Source of the DNA: Mizuhopecten yessoensis
Lineage: Eukaryota
Assembly: GCF_002113885.1 (NCBI RefSeq)
Contig: NW_018407298.1
Coordinates: forward strand, 129,462-193,461
DNA: 64,000 bases
Reading direction: 5' to 3'
A model generated the notes under the pieces. That model had not been told where the DNA came from and did no database searches. It saw only the letters and a list, made by a program, of their open reading frames with translations. A program made the translations under genes and the position numbers. Shown one piece after another: positions 28,401-59,100 of this stretch. Within the stretch, counting starts at the first letter, position 1. Each line of letters starts with the position of its first letter.

Positions 28401-31400
28401 AAATCCCACCCTCCTATATTTCCTGAAACATATCCCACCTTCCTATATTTTCTGGGACAAAACCCACCCTCCAAAATCCTGGGACAAACCCCAACCTCCT
28501 ATATATCCTGGACAAACCCCACCCTCCTATATTTCCTGGGACAAATCCCACCCTCTTATGTTTCCTGAGACAAACCCCACCCTCCTATATTTCCTGGGAC
28601 AAATCCCACCCTCCAAAATCCTGGGACAAACCCCATCCTCCTCTATTTCCTGGACAAACCCAACCCTCCTATGTTTCCTGAGACAAATCCCACCCTCCTA
28701 TGTTTCCTGAGACAAACCGTATCCAGCCATGATTCCAGAGACAAACCCCATTCTCCATGGCTTCCTGAGACAAACTCTAGCCTGCAATGTTTCTTGAGAC
28801 AACCCCCCCCCCCCCTACTTTACCATTTCTTCTTATAGTTACATTTATTTTTTTTATTTTGAGATATTTATATTCATGTCAGTTTATAAATAGAGTAACT
28901 CATAAACCCATAGATCTTCTTAAGAATCATTCAGACATTTTTAATAGATGTCTTGTTTATTATTACTTAAACTTTCATAAGTTGAATGAAACTTAGTCTA
29001 GTTCCAAGTAATCACAAAACTTCAGTGAATTAATGTAAACATACTTATTTCATTGGGCTAAAATTTTAGTACATTATGTGATTGTAACAAATTATTGCAT
29101 TGATGAATTTAAACAGATAAATTTAGTGCACTCTTAAAAGCTTGAAAAGTGCTAAAATAAGATTACCACTAATATATGTACATCTATAATCATTTTTACA
29201 GTGTGTGTTTCAGTGTTTCATGTTTGTGTTTCAGTTATTAAAGAAGGACCTGTCGGACATCCTGGCCCTTTTTGTTCAGTATGTGCCTTACATAACCATC
29301 ACAGCTCTCAACCTTATCCTCCCCATTGTCTTCCAAAAGCTGGTTCAGTTTGAGCGATACTTCCATGAAAATGAGATCAAGATCACATTGACTAGGTGAG
29401 TATAAGTCATCATGTATACTACTACTACTAATGATAATAATAATTTGAGATTCTTATATGATGCTTTAACCACAACCTAGTTCGTAGGTTTCTTAAAGTG
29501 GTACCCGGTTCACAAATGATTATCCGTGGTTATAGGGCCTTTGCAACCAGCCAATATCTTAATCAACTCGCTGGGGAGCATACAGCCAGTGTTGCCATTT
29601 CGGAACTCACAGCTAGCTTTCAACAATTCTAGCACTGCCTAACCACATACTCATTTACAGCTGAGTAGACTGGAACAAGCAAAGTAAAGTATCTTGTTCA
29701 AAGATACAACACAGTACTGTGACATGACTCGAACCTGCAACCCTTTGGTCATGAGCCGGGCATCCTTCCACTAGACTACTGTGCCTCTTATTAGGGATAT
29801 ATGTATACTAATTAGGGATACATGTGTACTAATTAGGGATACATGTGTACTAATTAGGGATACATGTATAATAATTACGAATACATGTTACTGTAATATG
29901 AATCTGCTTTCCAGTAGAGTTCCCAGCTAAGAAACTTCTAGAATATCTGAAGTTAACAGTATTTGCTGTTATATATAGAGCTCATCATGGAGCTGAAATA
30001 GTTTCTAAGTAAGTGATGTCTGTTTGGTGTACTTGTACTCATATCTAGTAACTTCAATAACAACAAAAATAGAGGAAACAACAGTTGTACCAGACAAGCT
30101 ATTAAATCCTATTGTTGGTGGCACAAACAATATATTAAAAATAATATCAGATTGTTGTTATTGATTAGAATACTACAATATGTTGGAGTCTTTAGAAAAG
30201 ATATTAAGTAAGAAAAAGACATCCAACATTATTCAAAATTTCTTATATTGAATATGTGCTCTTTATGTGAAAATGTTTCAACATTTCAGATCCATATTAT
30301 TGCGACTGGCCTCCCCAATAGTTCTGATAGCCATCTTGTATCAGCAACTGATCGGGGTGGGTGGGGAAGAGGATCTGGGGCGATGTGGCAATACTCGCTG
30401 GTCAACCAGCTCTGGAGGGACTGTCAAAGGCAGCGTCAAGGTAGAATTATCAAGGAGAAAGGCTGTAGGGAGAGATTCACTTGATCAAAAGTAATATAGT
30501 GAACTTTGTCAGGGGAGAAGGCGGGACACTTTCTCTAGTAAGACCTCTCTAGGGAGTTTGTCAAAGTGTAAATGAAAATAAAAACTTCTGCTGGGGGAGG
30601 GGAATGGTGGGGGTACTTTCTTTAGAGCCTCTTTGTAATGAACAGAACATCTTATACTGTGTAGTTGTACACTTGTTTCTTTTCAGATATGATAATTTAT
30701 AACAAGTAAAAGATCTTTATGCTTGATAACTTATAACAAGTAACAAAATCTTAATAGAATTAGCCATGTCATGTAGAGTATTCTTTATCAAGTAGAATGA
30801 AAAGATACCATAGGATGGATGGTTTGAATTAGGTTTAGAATGAATCTTCCACATTAATTTCATATTCTTGAGCGTATGTGGTAAACTGAGAGATACAGAC
30901 ATGCTGTGAGATAAATCTAATTATAAAGTACTGACTAACATACAGTGTATATGTATGAGAAATGATATGTAGGGCATATAGGCATCGATAGATGATATTA
31001 TGTTGCCAAAGTTATAAACACTTGAAGTATAGGCACTTGGTTTATTTGTATGTAAATGAGAATAATGTTTACCTGTGTTGTCAGTGTTGGGAGACCTATG
31101 TTGGACAGCAGATCTACAAGCTGGTATTGTTAGACCTGATTGTGGAGACCGGCATCGTCATATTTGTACACCTACCCCGCAGGTGAGATTACTTATTCTT
31201 GCATGCTAGACCGAGATATCCGCATTTCCAGCGGTGCTGAAAAATTCTATCTGACCCACGGGTCTAGATCGCTTACACATGCAGACTGGTGGAGGGAGTT
31301 ATAGTGACCTTTCAGGGTCACGCTATTGTTTGTGATGTCATTTTATGATGTTTTGGGGTCATTCAGGATCATTGACGTCACTAACAATTGACATCCGGGC

Positions 31401-34400
31401 TTCATATGCAAATGGGAAATGTGCAGACACTTTACAACTTTACTAGAAGAGCAGCTGTTTTTACAGGTTTAAGGTAATGAGCAAGAAATAGAATCCATCT
31501 ATGATGTGAGGTAAGGATAAGGTTATTCAAACCCTCAGGATAAAATATTGACCAAAAGACCCTCGGCATAGCCTCAGGTCTCCTACTCAATATTTTATCG
31601 CTTGGGTTTGAATAACCTTATCCATACCTCTCATCAGGGATGGATTCTATTACTCTATCCCTACTCCCTACCATTCAGTCTGAGGTTCTGTACACCAGGT
31701 AGATAAATAACTCCCTACCCTACCAGTCTGAGGTTCTGCTCTATCCTTACTCCCTACCATTCAGTCGGAGGTTCTACTCTATCCCTACTCCCTACCATTC
31801 AGTCTCAGGTTCTACTCTATCCCTACTCCCTACCATACAGTCTGATGTTCTGCTCTATCCCTACTCCCTACCATACAGTCTGAGGTTCTGCTCTATCCTT
31901 ACTCCCTACCATACAGTCTGAGGTTCTGCTCTATCCCTACTCCCTACCATACAGTCTGAGGTTCTACTCTATCCCTACTCCCTACCATACAGTCTGAGGT
32001 TCTACTCTATCCCTACTCCCTACCATACAGTCTCAGGTTCTGCTCTATCCCTACTCCCTACCATACAGTCTCAGGTTCTGCTCTATCCCTACTCCCTACC
32101 ATACAGTCGGAGGTTCTGCTCTGTCCCTACTCCCTACCTTACAGTCTGAGGTTCTACTCTATCCTTACTCCCTACCATACAGTCTGAGGTTCTACTCTAT
32201 CCCTACTCCCTACCATACAGTCTGAGGTTCTACTCTATCCCTACTCCCTACCATACAGTCTGAGGTTCTGCTCTATCCCTACTCCCTACCATACAGTCTC
32301 AGGTTCTGCTCTATCCCTACTCCCTACCATACAGTCTGAGGTTCTGCTCTATCCCTACTCCCTACCATACAGTCTGAGGTTCTACTCTATCCCTACTCCC
32401 TACCATACAGTCTGAGGTTCTACTCTATCCCTACTCCCTACCATACAGTCTGAGGTTCTGCTCTATCCCTACTCCCTACCATACAGTCTGAGGTTCTACT
32501 CTATCCCTACTCCCTACCATACAGTCTGAGGTTCTACTCTATCCCTACTCCCTACCATACAGTCTGAGGTTCTACTCTATCCCTACTCCCTACCATACAG
32601 TCTGAGGTTCTACTCTATCCCTACTCCCTACCATACAGTCTGAGGTTCTACTCTATCCCTACTCCCTACCATACAGTCTGAGGTTCTACTCTATCCCTAC
32701 TCCCTACCATACAGTCTGAGGTTCTACTCTATCCTTACTCCCTACCATACAGTCTGAGGTTCTGCTCTATCCCTACTCCCTACCATACAGTCTGAGGTTC
32801 TACTCTATCCCTACTCCCTACCATACAGTCTGAGGTTCTACTCTATCCCTACTCCCTACCATACAGTCTGATGTTCTGCTCTATCCCTACTCCCTACCAT
32901 ACAGTCTGAGGTTCTGCTCTATCCCTACTCCCTACCAGTTTGAGGTTCTGCTCTATCCCTACTCCCTACCATACAGTCTGAGGTTCTACTCTATCCCTAC
33001 TCCATACCATACAGTTTGAGGTTCTGCTCTATCCTTACTCCCTACCATACAGTCTGATGTTCTGCTCTATCCCTACTCCCTACTATACAGTCTGAGGTTC
33101 TACTCTATCCCTACTCCCTCTATCCCTACTCCCTACCATACAGTCTGAGGTTCTGCTCTATCCTTACTCCCTGCTATACAGTCTTAGGTTCTGCTCTATC
33201 TCTACTCCCTACCATACAGTCTCAGGTTCTACTCTATCCCTACTCCCTACCATACAGTCTGAGGTTCTACTCTATCCCTACTCATTACCATACAGTCTGA
33301 GGTTCTGCTCTATCCTTACTCCCTGCTATACAGTCTTAGGTTCTGCTCTATCTCTAATCCCTACCATACAGTCTCAGGTTCTACTCTATCCCTACTCCCT
33401 ACCATACAGTCTCAGGTTCTGCTCTATCCTTACTCCCTTCCATACAATCTCAGGTTCTACTCTATCCTTACTCCCTACTATACAGTCTGAGGTTCTGCTC
33501 TATCCTTACTCCATCCCATACAGTCTCAGGTTCTGCTCTATCCCTACTCCCTCCCATACAGTCTGAGGTTCTACTCTATCCCTACTCATTACCATACAGT
33601 CTGAGGTTCTGCTCTATTCCTACTCCCTACCATACAGTCTGAGGTTCTGCTCTATCCCTACTCCATACCATACAGTCTCAGGTTCTGCTCTATCCTTACT
33701 CCCTACCATACAGTCTGAGGTTCTACTCTATCCCTACTCATTACCATACAGTCTGAGTTTCTGCTCTATCCCTACTACCTACCACACAGTCTGATGTTCT
33801 GCTCTATCCTTACCCCCTGCTATACAGTCTTAGATTCTGCTCTATCTCTACTCCCTGCCATACAGTCTGAGGTTTTGCTCTATCCTTACTTCCAACCATA
33901 CAGTCTGAGGGTCTGCTCTATCCTTACTCCCCGCTATACAGTCTTAGGTTCTACTCTATCCCTACTCCCAACCATACAGTCTGATGTTCTGCTCTATCCT
34001 TACCCCCTACCATACAGTCTCTACTCCCTACCATGCAGTCTCAGGTTCTGCTCTATCCTTACCCCCTACCATACAGTCACAGGTTCTACTCTATCCCTAC
34101 TCATTACCATACAGTCTGAGTTTCTGCTCTATCCCTACCCCCTACCATACAGTCTCAGTTTCTACTTTCTCCTTACTCCCTACCATACAGGCTGAGGTTC
34201 TTCTCTATCCCTACTCCCTACCATACCGTTTGAGGTTCTGCTCTATACCTACTCCATACCATACAGGCTGAGGTTCTGCTCTATCCTTTCTCCCTGCTAT
34301 ACAGTCTTAGATTCTGCTCTATCTCTACTCCCTGCCATACAGTCTTAGGTTCTACTCTATCCCTACTCCCAACCATACAGACTGAGGTTCTGCTCTATTC

Positions 34401-53500: not shown

Positions 53501-53914
53501 ACACTCGGTATTACAGTCAAAATCGCTTTCATACAACAACCTTGGCTTTTGCCGAACCAAAAAGGATATACGCTTGTAAAACAATTTTAAGAGTGGAAAC
53601 TAATTAGATTAACTATAAACCTGGAATAGTCCTAACACATTCTATTTGTATAAGACGAGGTGCATAGTACAACAAAAAACGCAGCGTTTCGATCTATCCC
53701 CCCGCTAGTAATTATGCCAATAATTAAGTGTGTCTTCAGGTATAAAACATCACACGTCATGAATCGCTACACACCATGCATCTAACCGTTTGATATAACT
53801 CACAACAAGTCATATAGGTAATAAGCCGATACAAGTCCAGTATATTGACAGAAAGAATACTTGGAGGCCGTCGGGTGGTTTTAATGTTTGATCAAACATA
53901 CCATAAAACCATTC

Positions 53915-55620
53915 GAGATAAGTTCACGTCATAAACCATTCGAGATAAGTTCACGTCATATACCATTCGAGATAAGTTCACGTCATATACCATTCGAGAT
54001 AACTTCACGTCACATACCATTCGAGATTAATAGAATCTCTCACCCCCTTGTGGGTGAGATAGGGGAATCTTAACCCTCGGGGGAAAATTCTTTAGTTACC
54101 AAACACGAGGCTCTGCCGAGTGTTTGGCGACTTAAGAATCTTTTCCGAGGGTTGAGATTCAACTATCTAACCCACAAGGGGATGAATGATTCTTTTTCTC
54201 TTACCCTGTTCTCCTATTGTCATATATATTATGTAATGAAAACGTCACATGCTAAATTCAGGGTTGACGTGACGTTGATGGATTGTTGACGAAACGTCAT
54301 CGTATTGTTGACGTGACGTCATACCATTGTTATGAATAGGGGAATTCCTCCGTCTCTGCCCTAGGGTGAGACTAATAGAATCCATCCCTGATGTGAGGTA
54401 AGGGTAAGGTTATTCAAACCCTCGGGATAAAATATTGAGCAAAATACCCTCGGCAAAGCCTCGGGTCTCCTGCTCAATATTTTATCCCTCGGGTTTGAAT
54501 ACCCTTATCCTTACCTCACATCAGGGATGGATTCTATTTCTTGCTTATCACCTAAAACCCGTAAAAACAGCTGCTTTTCTAGTAAAGTTGTAAACTGTGC
54601 GCACATTTCTCATTTGCATATAGAGCCCGGATGGCAATTGCTTGTGACGTCAATGACCCTGACAGACCCCGAAACGTCATAAAATGACGTCACGAACAAT
54701 AGCGTGACCCTGAAAGGTCACTGTAATTCCCCCGCCAGTCTGCGCGTGTAAGCGATCTAGACCCGTGGGTCGGATAGCATTTTCCAGCACGGCCGGAAAT
54801 GCGGATATCTCGGTCTGGTACGCAAGAAAAGGAATTCTCTTACCCTGGACAGGGATATCCTCCATTTTACCGGTGTGAGATTTTCTTATCTCACCCCAGG
54901 GTTGAGACAAGCTACACGTGTTCTTTGCACGTTCTCAATAATTGTATGACGTCATAGCAACAATAACATGACGTCACGGCAACAATACAATGACGTCACG
55001 TCGACAATTTAGCCGCATCACATCAACATTGTCTTGCATTGATGTAACGTCTATATAAAATACCAGGGTAAACAGGGTAAGAGAAAAATAATCATTCACC
55101 CCCGTGGGAGTGAGACAGGGTGATCTCAACCCTCGGGGTAAGATTCTTAAGCTGTCAAACACTCGGGAAGCCTCGTGTTGGACAACTTAAGAATATTACC
55201 CCTGTCTCATCCCCAAGGGGGTGAAAGATTCTATTAATCTTACACCGGTAAAAGTGCGGATACACCTGTCCAGGGTAAGAGAAAACTTCACGTCATACAC
55301 CATTCGAGATAACTTCACGTCATATATCGTTCGAGATAACTTCACGTCCATATATCGTTCGAGATAACTTCACGTCCATATACCGTTCGAGATAACTTCA
55401 CGTCCATATACCGTTCGAGATAACTTCACGTCATATACCATTCGAGATAACTTCACCTCATATATCGTTCGAGATAACTTCACGTCATATACCGTTCGAG
55501 ATAACTTCACCTCATATATTGTTCGAGATAACTTCACGTCCATATACCGTTCGAGATAACTTCACGTCCATATACCGTTCGAGATAACTTCACGTCCATA
55601 TACCGTTCGAGATAACATGA
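53915..55620. repeat. 26-27-bp minisatellite split by nested insertions (units at 53915-54027 and 55284-55620)
   Basis: Unit TACCRTTCGAGATAACTTCACGTC(C)ATA. Confidence 0.93.
54028..55283 (+). mobile_element. Nested hairpin-ended elements: outer X (54028-55283) containing Y (54373-54828, +) and Z (54835-55236, -); possibly Crypton-like non-autonomous elements
   Basis: All three begin TAATAGAATC followed by a ~150-170-bp palindrome and end (GA/CAA)GAA; removing X regenerates the host unit TCGAGAT|AACTTC exactly. Superfamily assignment is inference. Confidence 0.85.
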
Positions 55621-55870: not shown

Positions 55871-56159
55871 GTCTGAGAAATGAACCTATCAGAAGGCGTT
55901 GTATTAAGAGGATTACAACCGTAGTATGCACATAGAGAACCGTAACCCACAACCAATATATGTACTACTGCGCAACATATAAACTGTTAACAGAATCCAC
56001 CCGTATCTATAATTTCATGTTCTAATCAATGTAGGAGTTTCTTGAATTTTTTCGACCCTGCTTGAAAAGTTTCCGTAGTTTGCCTTTATCTTGGTTCCTA
56101 CCTGAATCCCAATGTAGAATAAGACCATGCTGAAGGAGAGCTATTCTCTATTCTAAAAC

Positions 56160-59100
56160 AGTGTCTCTACAGCCACTGTGATAACAGTGTCCATACCGCC
56201 ATTGTAATAACAGTGTCCATGGAGGCACTGTAAGAACAGTGTCCATACAGCCATTGCCATAACAGTGTCCACACAGCCACTGTAATAACAGTGTCCATAC
56301 AGCCATTGTAATAACAGTGTCCATACAGCTATTGTAATAACAGTGACCATACAGCCATTGTAATAACAGTGTCCATACAGCTATTGTAATAACAGTGTCC
56401 GTACAGCCATTGCCATAACAGTGTCCATACAGCCACTGTACTAATTGTGTCCATACAGCCACTGTAATAACAGTGTCCGTACAGCTATTGTAATAACAGT
56501 GTCCATACATCTATTGTAATAACAGTGTCCGTACAGCCACTGTGATAAAAGTGTCCCTACATCTATTGTAATAACAGTGTCCATACAGCCACTGTGATAA
56601 CAGTGTCCCTACAACTATTGTAATAACAGTGTCCATACAGCCACTGTGATAATAGTGTCCCTACAGCTATTGTAATGACAGTGTCCATACAGCCACTGTG
56701 ATAACAGTGTCCATACAGCTATTGAAATAACAGTGTCCATACAGCTATTGTAATATCAGTGTCCATACAGCTATTGTAATAACAGACTCCATACAGTCAC
56801 TGTAATGGCCGTGTTCATAGAGCCACTCTAATAACAGTGTCCATACAGCCATTGCCATAACAGTGTCCATACAGCCACTGTACTAATTGTGTCCATACAG
56901 CCACTGTAATAACAGTGTCCGTACAGCTATTGTAATAACAGTGTCCATACAGCTATTGTAATGACAGTGTCCATACAGCCACTGTGATAACAGTGTCCAT
57001 AGAGCCACTGTAATAACAGTGTCCATACAGCCATTGCCATAACAGTGTCCATACAGCCACTGTACTAATAGTGTCCATACAGCCACTGTAATAACAGTGT
57101 CCCTACATCTATTGTAATAACAGTGTCCATACAGCCACTGTGATAACAGTGTCCCTACATCTATTGTAATAACCGTGTCCATAAAGCCACTGTGATAACA
57201 GTGTCCATACAGCTATTGTAATGACAGTGTCCATACAGACACTGTGATAACAGTGTCCATACATCTATTGTAATGACAGTGTCCATACATATATTGTAAT
57301 AACAGTGTCCGCACATCTATTGTAATAACAGTGTCCATACATCTATTGTAATAACAGTGCCAATACAGCCACTGTGATAACAGTGTCCATACAGCCACTG
57401 TAATGACCGTGTCCGTACAGCTATTGTAATGACAGTGTCCATACAGCCATTGCAATAATAGTGTCCATACAGCCATTGTAATAACAGTGCCCATACAGCC
57501 ACTGTGATAACAGTGTCCCTACATCCATTGTTATAACAGTGTCTATACAGCCATTGTAATAACAGTGTCCATACAGCCACTGTTATAACACTGTCCATAC
57601 AGCCGTCGTAATAACAGTGTCCATACAGACACTGTAATAAAAGTGTTCATACATCCATTGTAATAACAGTGTTCATACAGCCACTGTAATAACAGTGTCC
57701 ATAGAGCCATTGTTATCACAGTGGCCGTACAGCCACTGTAATAACAGTGTCCATACAACCATTGCAATAAGAGTGTCCATACAGCCACTGTAATGACAGT
57801 GTCCATACAGCCATTGCAATAAGAGTGTCCATACAGCCATTTAAATAACAGTGTCCATACAGCCACTGTGATAACAGTGTCCATACAGCCATTGCAATAA
57901 GAGTGTCTATACAGCCATTTAAATAACAGTGTATATACAGCCATTGTAATAACAGTGTCCATACAGCCACTGTAATAACAGTGTCCATACAGCCATTGTA
58001 ATATCAGTGTTCATACAACCATTGTAATAACAGTGTCCAAACAGCCATTGTAATAACAGACTCCATACAGTCACTGTAATGACAGTGTCCATACAGCCAT
58101 TGTAATGACAGTGTCCATACAGCCACTGTTATAACAGTGTCCATATAGCCATTGTAATAACAGTGTCCATACAGCCACTATACTAATTGTGTCCATACAG
58201 CCACTGTAATAACAGTGTTCGTACAGCTATTGTAATAACAGTGTCCATACATCGATTGTAATAACAGTGTCCATACAGCCAGTGTAAATAACAGTGTCCA
58301 TACAGCCACTGTAATAACAGTGTCCCTACATCTATTGAAATAACAGTGTCCATACAGCCACTGTGATAATAGTGTCCCTACATCTATTGTTATAACAGTG
58401 TCCATAAAGCCACTGTGATAACAGTGTTCATACAGCTATTGTAATGACAGTGTCCATACAGCCACTGTGATAACAGTGCCCATACATCTATTGTAATGAC
58501 GGTGTCCATACATCTATTGTAATAACAGTGTCCGCACATCTATTGTAATAACAGTGTCCATACATCTATTGTAATAACAGTGCCCATACAGCCACTGTGA
58601 TAACAGTGTCCATACAGCCACTGTAATGACCGTGTCCGTACAGCTATTGTAATGACAGTGTCCATACAGCCATTGCAATAATAGTGCCCATACAGCCACT
58701 GTGATAACAGTGTCCCTACATCCATTGTTATAACAGTGTCTATACAGCCATTGTAATAACAGTGTCCATACAGCCACTGTTATAACACTGTCCATACAGC
58801 CATCGTAATAACAGTGTCCATACAGACACTGTAATAAAAGTGTTCATACATCCATTGTAATAACAGTGTCCATACAGCCACTGTAATAACAGTGTCCATA
58901 CAACCATTGCAATAAGAGTGTCCATACAGCCACTGTAATGACAGTGTCCATAGAGCCATCGTAATAACAGTGTCCATACAGACACTGTAATAACAGTGTC
59001 CATACAACCATTGCAATAAGAGTGTCCATACAGCCACTGTAATGACAGTGTCCATAGAGCCATCGTAATAACAGTGTCCATACAGACACTGTAATAACAG

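Follow-up and report, generated by a model that had tools for sequence, protein, structure and literature searches.

Cryptons have been described as low-copy elements marked only by direct repeats of 4-6 bp, and those of animals have been reported to lack terminal repeats (PMC3212892, PMC8969392, PMC13465315, PMC13565253). According to a 2026 review their transposition has never been demonstrated experimentally (PMC13565253), and the KIAA1958, QRICH1 and ZMYM2-like genes were derived from Cryptons by Kojima and Jurka 2011 (PMC3212892). As a general rule, the core sites used by tyrosine recombinases consist of two inverted arms around a region of 6-8 bp (PMC3212892). In bivalves, elements of the Helentron type (HLE2 and HINE) are abundant (PMC7492417). 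Here we analyzed a nest of three hairpin-ended insertions, called X, Y and Z, in a 64-kb stretch of DNA (64,000 nucleotides, hereafter the window) belonging to the 988-Mb assembly of the scallop Mizuhopecten yessoensis. Taking together their ends, their target site and a recombinase-bearing element of the same anatomy, we are fairly confident that X, Y and Z represent three related high-copy Crypton families of the DUF3504/CryptonA tyrosine-recombinase lineage, each as a non-autonomous member. The features on which the argument leans are the following, in the coordinates of the window:

53908-54027: left part of the host minisatellite, 27-bp unit (4.4 copies by Tandem Repeats Finder, 96% matches), the last unit cut after ...TCGAGAT
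54028-55283, plus strand: X, a probable non-autonomous Crypton-type element with Y and Z inside it, 398 bp long without them; start TAATAGAATC, end ..GGGTAAGAGAA
54030-54201, plus strand: terminal hairpin of X with tip GA-GGC-TCT-GCC-GA (inverted-repeat scan, I5; computed folding energy -56.1 kcal/mol)
54194-54208, plus strand: subterminal inverted repeat of X directly after the hairpin, 15 nt, 100%, complementary to the 3' end of X at 55271-55283
54263-54331, plus strand: internal 22-bp tandem repeats of X, rich in TGACGTCA
54366-54372, plus strand: GTGAGAC, left arm of the internal dyad target of X, with Y inserted directly after it
54373-54828, plus strand: Y, second family, 456 bp, ending ..GCAAGAA, with 81-nt hairpin arms (89%)
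54374-54538, plus strand: hairpin of Y, with an inverted (TC-type) tip
54829-54834: AAGGAA, 6-bp central spacer of the X dyad, between the two insertion points
54835-55236, minus strand: Z, third family, inverted, 402 bp, hairpin at about 55086-55236
54835-54847 and 55073-55085: inverted repeat of Z (inverted-repeat scan)
54873-54894: the internal dyad of Z itself, unoccupied, reading GTGTGAGAT-TTTCTT-ATCTCAC on the plus strand
55237-55283, plus strand: 3' tail of X, with the right dyad arm ATCTTAC and then the 3' end ..CCAGGGTAAGAGAA
55284-55616: right part of the host minisatellite, 28-bp unit (12.3 copies, 93%), resuming with AACTTC
31196-31652, minus strand: second Y-family copy, solitary, 86.7% identical to Y, with flanks ..GATAGAG^ and ^TAAGTAATCTCAC (^TAAGTAA-TCTCAC)

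X is 1256 bp long and interrupts one unit of a 27/28-bp minisatellite, with ...TCGAGAT on its left and AACTTC... on its right, the intact neighboring units reading TCGAGATAACTTC. Compared with these units no base has been gained and none lost, and the boundaries of X are unambiguous, no base being common to both sides. The preliminary description of this DNA, made from the sequence alone, had claimed just such a precise insertion without target-site duplication (TSD), and the empty site in the adjoining units bears it out. It had also placed Y and an inverted Z 6 nt apart in the 3' part of X. Removing both from X leaves a 398-bp sequence, X'. Its full length can be aligned with Z (76.5%) and with nine X-family copies of the genome that carry no insertion (87.6-89.9% over positions 1-398, the internal dyad being intact). 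X' is hence a standard uninterrupted X-family copy, and therefore Y and Z are later insertions into X. The unit of the host minisatellite includes CACGTCA, and a third minisatellite array lies about 500 bp beyond the host array of X, at 56150-56500.

All three elements have the anatomy previously claimed for them, namely the shared start TAATAGAATC, a long palindrome at one end only and a short inverted copy at the 3' end. The terminal palindrome of X has arms of 57 nt. Folded as single-stranded DNA, the hairpin of X reaches -56.1 kcal/mol (z = -12.8) and that of Y -74.4 kcal/mol (z = -19.6), values equalled by none of 200 shuffles in either case; energies were computed for these two, the hairpin of Z being known from its arms in the inverted-repeat list (two blocks), with its end placed at 55236. 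The 3' termini of X, Y and Z are inverted copies of the 13-15 nt that directly follow their own hairpins, and the scan also returned a 48-nt match between the 3' part of Z and the tail of X. The earlier statement that terminal inverted repeats are lacking holds in the strict sense, but an inverted repeat of 13-15 nt does exist, one of its arms having been moved inward by the hairpin. The end of Y (...GCAAGAA, at 54828) was set by tandem junctions elsewhere in the genome, in which GCAAGAA is followed directly by TAATAGAATCC. About three 22-bp tandem repeats rich in the CRE-like palindrome TGACGTCA are also found in the bodies of X (54263-54331) and Z (54946-55008).

Genome-wide searches with the three elements established them as high-copy families. 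The first-look candidates numbered 2047 for the left part of X, 845 for Y and 1841 for Z, of which 40 were scored per search, these being full-length and 87-95% identical. Copies of the Z family are 89-95% identical, and all 30 that were fetched start with TAATAGAATCTTTCACC and end with CCAGGGTAAGAGAA, with TAATAGA always at the hairpin end (30/30), so that polarity is fixed. Most of 18 Y-family copies start with TAATAGAATCCATCCC and end with GCAAGAA, a few carrying point variants. The internal loops of the hairpins are 2x2 or 3x3 purine-purine mismatches, with computed folding z values between -13 and -20, and the unpaired blocks are purine-purine on the strand opposite to the open reading frame (ORF) in X, in most Y copies and in two coding elements of 640 and 506 amino acids (aa) described below. 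The Y hairpin in the nest has its tip inverted relative to most Y-family copies: among 12 classifiable copies at least six (up to 10 if degenerate purine tips are counted) have the purine-type tip and two only have it flipped. The solitary Y copy at 31196-31652 has typical flanks and the common GA-type tip, unlike the flipped tip of the nested Y.

To describe the target site, we built a logo from 38 copies of the X, Y and Z families lying in unrelated DNA, oriented hairpin first. Its consensus is RGAY^A-N4-T-N-TCY, with R at -4 in 35 copies, G at -3 in 26, A at -2 in 35 and T or C at -1 in 32 on the upstream side, and A at +1 in 28, T at +6 in 23, T at +8 in 33, C at +9 in 23 and T or C at +10 in 35 on the downstream side (binomial P values for the enrichment between 1e-8 and 1e-14). 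The similarity of the 5' flanks first noticed among the three elements of the nest thus generalizes to a highly significant pattern. RGA and TCY are inverse complements 8 bp apart, and the target is therefore a dyad, with an entry point for the second strand 6 bp away and a 5' stagger. The preferred form is RGAY^(6 bp)^RTCY, RGAY always adjoining the hairpin end, and in the window Y and Z fill both entry points of a single dyad, GTGAGAC^AAGGAA^ATCTTAC. Two inverted arms, a spacing of 6 bp and a 5' stagger are the geometry of a tyrosine-recombinase core site. Direct repeats of 4-6 bp matching the target, known from the termini of fungal and oomycete Cryptons, are absent: X shares no base with its target, and the consensus flanks (T or C at -1, A at +1) cannot match the element ends (A...T).

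The same dyad is found within the elements themselves. Copies of the X and Z families each carry one about 45 bp from the end opposite to the hairpin, and by eye a dyad (AAGAT-AAACCT-GTCTT) is also present at the corresponding position of the 640-aa element. Further dyads appear at the junctions of an inserted element, at the hairpin end as flank RGAY^TAATAGA-ATCT and at the other end as ...AGAA^N6-WTCT. Because each element carries a dyad and both of its junctions re-create one, nests and head-to-tail arrays are to be expected, and the arrays indeed show perfect head-to-tail junctions. Z copies lie in or against relatives in 12 of 30 cases, as opposed to a background of at most about 2% (P = 2.5e-13). 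Six of these 12 are in the internal dyad, on either strand, and the other ones are in hairpin arms with GAGAT-ATCTC or directly behind the end of another element; the samples of X and Y showed the same nesting pattern. The hotspot that the preliminary description had proposed for the 3' end of the element is confirmed by independent copies in the internal dyad, with L002, L003, L091 and L109 on one strand and L017, L019, L028 and L118 on the other. The X/Y/Z composite of the window was not seen as a whole elsewhere. A candidate inverted insertion at a re-created junction (L024) was rejected, as it sits in a rearranged region. At L107 (G000:C5386:1394650-1396180) we observed an array of 351-bp units made of X-family copies truncated shortly after the internal dyad (X' 1-361), from which the internal dyad may act as an alternative end.

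Which enzyme moves these elements is indicated by coding relatives. The genome contains at least 150 matches to DUF3504, and among the matches listed two families have intact ORFs in many copies, one of 506 aa (at least eight copies) and one of 640-645 aa (at least five). None of the 150 listed matches falls on the contig of the window, in accordance with the earlier observation that the window contains no transposase. In the case of the 640-aa family, the copy at L066 is an element of 2487 bp whose sole ORF of at least 150 aa inside the bounds is the 640-aa one, which matches DUF3504 (3.5e-21); its match to the catalytic end of Phage_integrase (21.8 bits) is under the Pfam cut-off of 27.1, while that of the 506-aa ORF (40.3 bits) is above the cut-off. 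Alignment pointed to R344, T485-x-x-R488, H511 and Y520 as candidate catalytic residues of the 640-aa ORF and to R250, H382-x-x-R385, H408 and Y417 as those of the 506-aa ORF (L065); the residues named for the 640-aa ORF are lost in the domesticated vertebrate protein. Proteins related to the 640-aa ORF come from bivalves, corals, acorn worms and vertebrates and bear the names KIAA1958-, QRICH1- or ZMYM2-like, QRICH1 being the sole one with a solved structure.

The ends of this coding element resemble those of the nest. The L066 element starts with TTCTCCCACCCTTCACAGG where X and Z, on the matching strand, start with TTCTCTTACCCTGGACAGG, and the 5' ends of the 640-aa element and of the non-autonomous copies match at 14 of 19 positions by eye. 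An inverted copy of its own start comes directly before a 170-nt hairpin (-75.8 kcal/mol, z = -19.0), which has the tip GA-GGC-N3-GCC-GA, and the element ends with GATTCTATTA. Of the seven loci fetched for the family, six have TTCTCCCACCC as the exact start of homology and five show the GATTCTATTA end. Parts of the L066 hairpin recur in X and Z, namely the block at its opening, the block ATCTCAACCyTCGGG and a tip formed by a 2x2 purine loop around GGC-N3-GCC, and blast aligned the hairpin of this family with that of Z at 77-80% identity over 64-68 nt. The 640-aa element and the non-autonomous copies thus share the TTCTC start, the GATTCTATTA end, the subterminal inverted repeat, the internal dyad near the 5' end and the flank pattern. 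In two further recombinase families, of 506 and 462 aa, the ORF is followed by a long palindrome whose sequence is unrelated, and the 506-aa family has the flanking inverted repeat too, with ends that are sharp in seven copies. A palindrome was also seen downstream of a 554-aa ORF, a locus that proved to be another copy of the 640-aa family. Of the two mechanisms previously suggested for the nest, the tyrosine recombinase is hence favored by an ORF of the DUF3504/Phage_integrase kind with matching ends and flank pattern; the HUH alternative is not, no Rep-bearing element with such ends having been found at the two Rep loci examined.

Evidence for exact mobility came from the same L066 copy. 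In DNA contigs from two other studies, L066 position 2565 is followed directly by 5053, 2487 nt being missing between perfect flanks; divergence of further contigs sets in at 2568 and 5054. An exact empty allele in two data sets, from other individuals, means that the coding copy is an insertion polymorphism, with neither duplication nor loss at the empty site. RNA libraries contain the 640-aa element as contigs with genomic flanks attached, which is no proof of transcription. Several side observations concern these coding families. A deletion form of the 640-aa element, in which the end of the ORF is joined to mid-hairpin with ACTC between (L066 4269-4957), occurs in one RNA library and one DNA run and may be a non-autonomous derivative in the making. 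In some 640-aa copies (L067-L078) the inner part of one hairpin arm is replaced by the reverse complement of the version in the other arm (AGAGGG versus TCGGGA), suggesting that parts of the palindrome have undergone flip-type rearrangement. In the 506-aa family, four of seven copies seemingly lie in tandem repeats (by eye; L065, L119-L128), one of them with a 46-bp repeat on both sides; together with the position of X, this may mean a preference for arrays, or arrays may merely supply many copies of the target. At L065, the direct repeat of 46 bp on either side of the 506-aa copy was considered as a long duplication and rejected, being locus-specific while the flanks of other copies are unrelated, and it most likely represents two units of a tandem repeat.

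Several points weigh against this assignment. The link of X, Y and Z to the 640-aa family is one of shared motifs, anatomy and target, with hairpin identity of 77-80%, and among the nine recombinase families sampled from the at least 150 matches none provided a direct coding parent of these elements, with identity above 90% at both ends. A threonine replaces the catalytic histidine of HxxR in the 640-aa ORF. The families with ORFs of 539, 595, 415, 344, 689 and 547 aa showed no palindrome in the 1.2 kb downstream; in those six it may lie elsewhere or be absent. The polymorphic copy of L066 has a boundary ambiguity of 4 nt, unlike X, and composites moving as units could inflate the counts of nested copies. 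Neither a circle nor a strand-exchange intermediate was observed, and, as will be seen, parts of the anatomy and the gene content of the genome also recall Helentrons.

How such elements might move can be proposed from their structure. Read in the direction of the recombinase gene, the element consists of a 5' end TTCT..., a body, an inverted copy of the 5' end and a hairpin of 130-170 nt ending in GATTCTATTA. Joining of the two ends in a circle would bring the short repeat, the hairpin and the 5' end together in a single long palindrome that includes the joint. The circle is an inferred form, and in contigs head-to-tail arrays of the genome give an identical joint. Strand exchange by the recombinase would then be limited to a single pair, possibly at a site folded into a hairpin, with replication completing the insertion. 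Exchange of a single strand pair is probable because the insertions usually share no bases with the target and their polarity is always fixed. The joint of the element has a 7-nt spacer, TAATAGA, which differs in length and sequence from the target spacers; with no target base shared either, a classical two-step exchange would therefore be hindered. Within a circle, the joint would be placed in one arm of a long and imperfect palindrome, which makes a folded site like attC or attP plausible. In the recombination of integron attC with attI and of CTX-phi attP(+) with dif, an imperfect hairpin of two inverted half-sites is used with fixed polarity, no identity of spacers is needed and no duplication is made. 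One-strand exchange followed by replication probably fits the data better than a two-step exchange, and it also fits the thousands of copies. As a tentative proposal, which we hold to be possible and somewhat short of probable, these would be animal Cryptons of a copying mode, in which a folded-hairpin site recombines with a dyad of 6-bp spacing, a single strand pair is exchanged and replication finishes the process, making them a eukaryotic counterpart of attC and CTX-phi with the internal and re-created junction dyads as their own landing pad.

A Crypton recombinase could also follow the Goodwin model and integrate a double-stranded circle by classical double-strand exchange, with the hairpin serving as a protein-binding palindrome only and neither folded DNA nor replication being involved. 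The dyad target with its 6-bp spacing and the junction sites re-created by insertion would be expected from it, the empty allele of L066 is exact, and the 4 nt shared at the boundaries of the L066 copy recall the 4-6-bp direct repeats of fungal Cryptons (PMC3212892). It is at odds with X, which shares no base with its target, and with most copies, which cannot share any (T or C at -1 against a last A, A at +1 against a first T). Spacer mismatch blocks the second exchange in well-studied tyrosine recombinases, and the 7-nt joint spacer TAATAGA is unlike the target spacers. Moreover, of the two products that could arise just one has been observed, TAATAGA being kept in each of the 30 Z copies, and copy numbers in the thousands fit a copying mode. 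We consider the classical exchange unlikely for these reasons.

Still less probable, in our judgment, is that X, Y and Z are non-autonomous elements of the Helentron type (HLE2/HINE) moved by a Rep/helicase, the hairpin being an oversized 3' terminator and the recombinase a captured gene. This explanation was initially favored with moderate confidence and was dropped once the recombinase-bearing element with the same ends was found. The anatomy that defines Helentrons and HLE2 is present, with a short inverted repeat, a stem-loop beyond one of its arms, no TSD, central tandem repeats and arrays (PMC4067079, PMC3627910, PMC11417382). Read on the opposite strand, the elements do show the 12-16-nt inverted repeats of HLE2: the right arm is subterminal, with a 3' stem-loop beyond it whose length exceeds those described by a factor of 5-10. 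At least 56 Helitron_like_N matches of the HLE2 kind (DUF6570 marker) occur in the genome, with relatives in other bivalves that carry PIF1 and an endonuclease domain, most Helitron-like Rep copies being broken, and 2.3 kb upstream of one Rep ORF there is a full Y-like copy of the same orientation (L061 2541-2993, G000:C217), which we take for a coincidence. Neither of the Rep loci walked (C217, 20 kb; C5526, 18.6 kb) has such ends as its own, however, and at C5526 there were neither X/Y/Z ends nor, from flank to flank, a convincing inverted repeat; a RepHel partner with termini TTCTCTTACCC...GATTCTATTA was not found at these two loci of at least 56, a weak negative. An apparent 2064-aa ORF at C217 was discarded as an artefact of a run of 4701 N, into which the Rep ORF runs. 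The target also speaks against Helentrons: it is neither T^T nor T-rich, but a dyad rich in G and A whose two entry points are separated by 6 bp, and X is inserted between T and A. So do the hairpins, which have 130-170 nt against 5-30 nt in described HLE2. Three families of unrelated sequence pair a tyrosine-recombinase ORF, their sole gene, with this anatomy, for which capture is hard to invoke. Finally, although their long palindromes and small size resemble foldback elements, it is scarcely credible that these are foldback-type miniature inverted-repeat elements of a DDE transposon or chance palindromes in repetitive DNA, as no target duplication accompanies X, the polymorphic copy of L066 or the 38 aligned copies, the palindrome is at one end only and dozens of copies have identical ends down to the base.

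Placing our results among the known systems, the bacterial HUH elements IS200/IS605 and IS91 are alike in inserting precisely beside a short specific sequence that is left outside the element, in their end hairpins, in the absence of a TSD and in a flank sequence resembling the other end of the element; they differ in that no HUH gene is found with the scallop ends and in that the scallop target is a dyad used on both strands. Helentron/Helitron2 (HLE2) and the HINE/DINE-1 elements share with the scallop families the short inverted repeat, its right arm subterminal and followed by a terminal stem-loop, the lack of a TSD, the central tandem repeats and the arrays. They insert between T and T, have stem-loops of 5-30 nt and are mobilized by RepHel, whereas the scallop elements enter RGAY^N6^RTCY, carry a hairpin of about 170 nt and have tyrosine-recombinase relatives. 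Our results explain the pile-up of elements, the head-to-tail arrays and a possible confusion with Helentron-derived HINEs in the repeat annotation of bivalves. The integron attC and CTX-phi sites are bacterial, 60-150 nt long and known single-strand substrates, whereas in the scallop, an animal host, single-stranded intermediates are a matter of inference.

The closest likeness is to Cryptons (CryptonA/DUF3504; Goodwin 2003; PMC3212892), in which a recombinase with DUF3504 is the only gene, with KIAA1958/QRICH1/ZMYM2-like homologues, no TSD is made and non-autonomous derivatives far outnumber coding copies. The scallop families differ from the Cryptons described in their subterminal inverted repeat, their terminal hairpin of 130-170 nt, their thousands of copies and a defined dyad target with which usually no base is shared. 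A full-text search of the literature on Cryptons with hairpins, covering papers rather than the entries of Repbase and Dfam, returned no description of such ends. Standard guides present Cryptons as lacking recognizable ends beyond a few repeated bases, whereas here both the ends and the dyad target are defined to the base. With these and an apparently intact, polymorphic coding copy at hand, a mini-element, its target and the recombinase can be combined in an assay. What this locus contributes is a dyad target with two entry points, re-created sites that explain nests and arrays, and a polymorphic coding copy.

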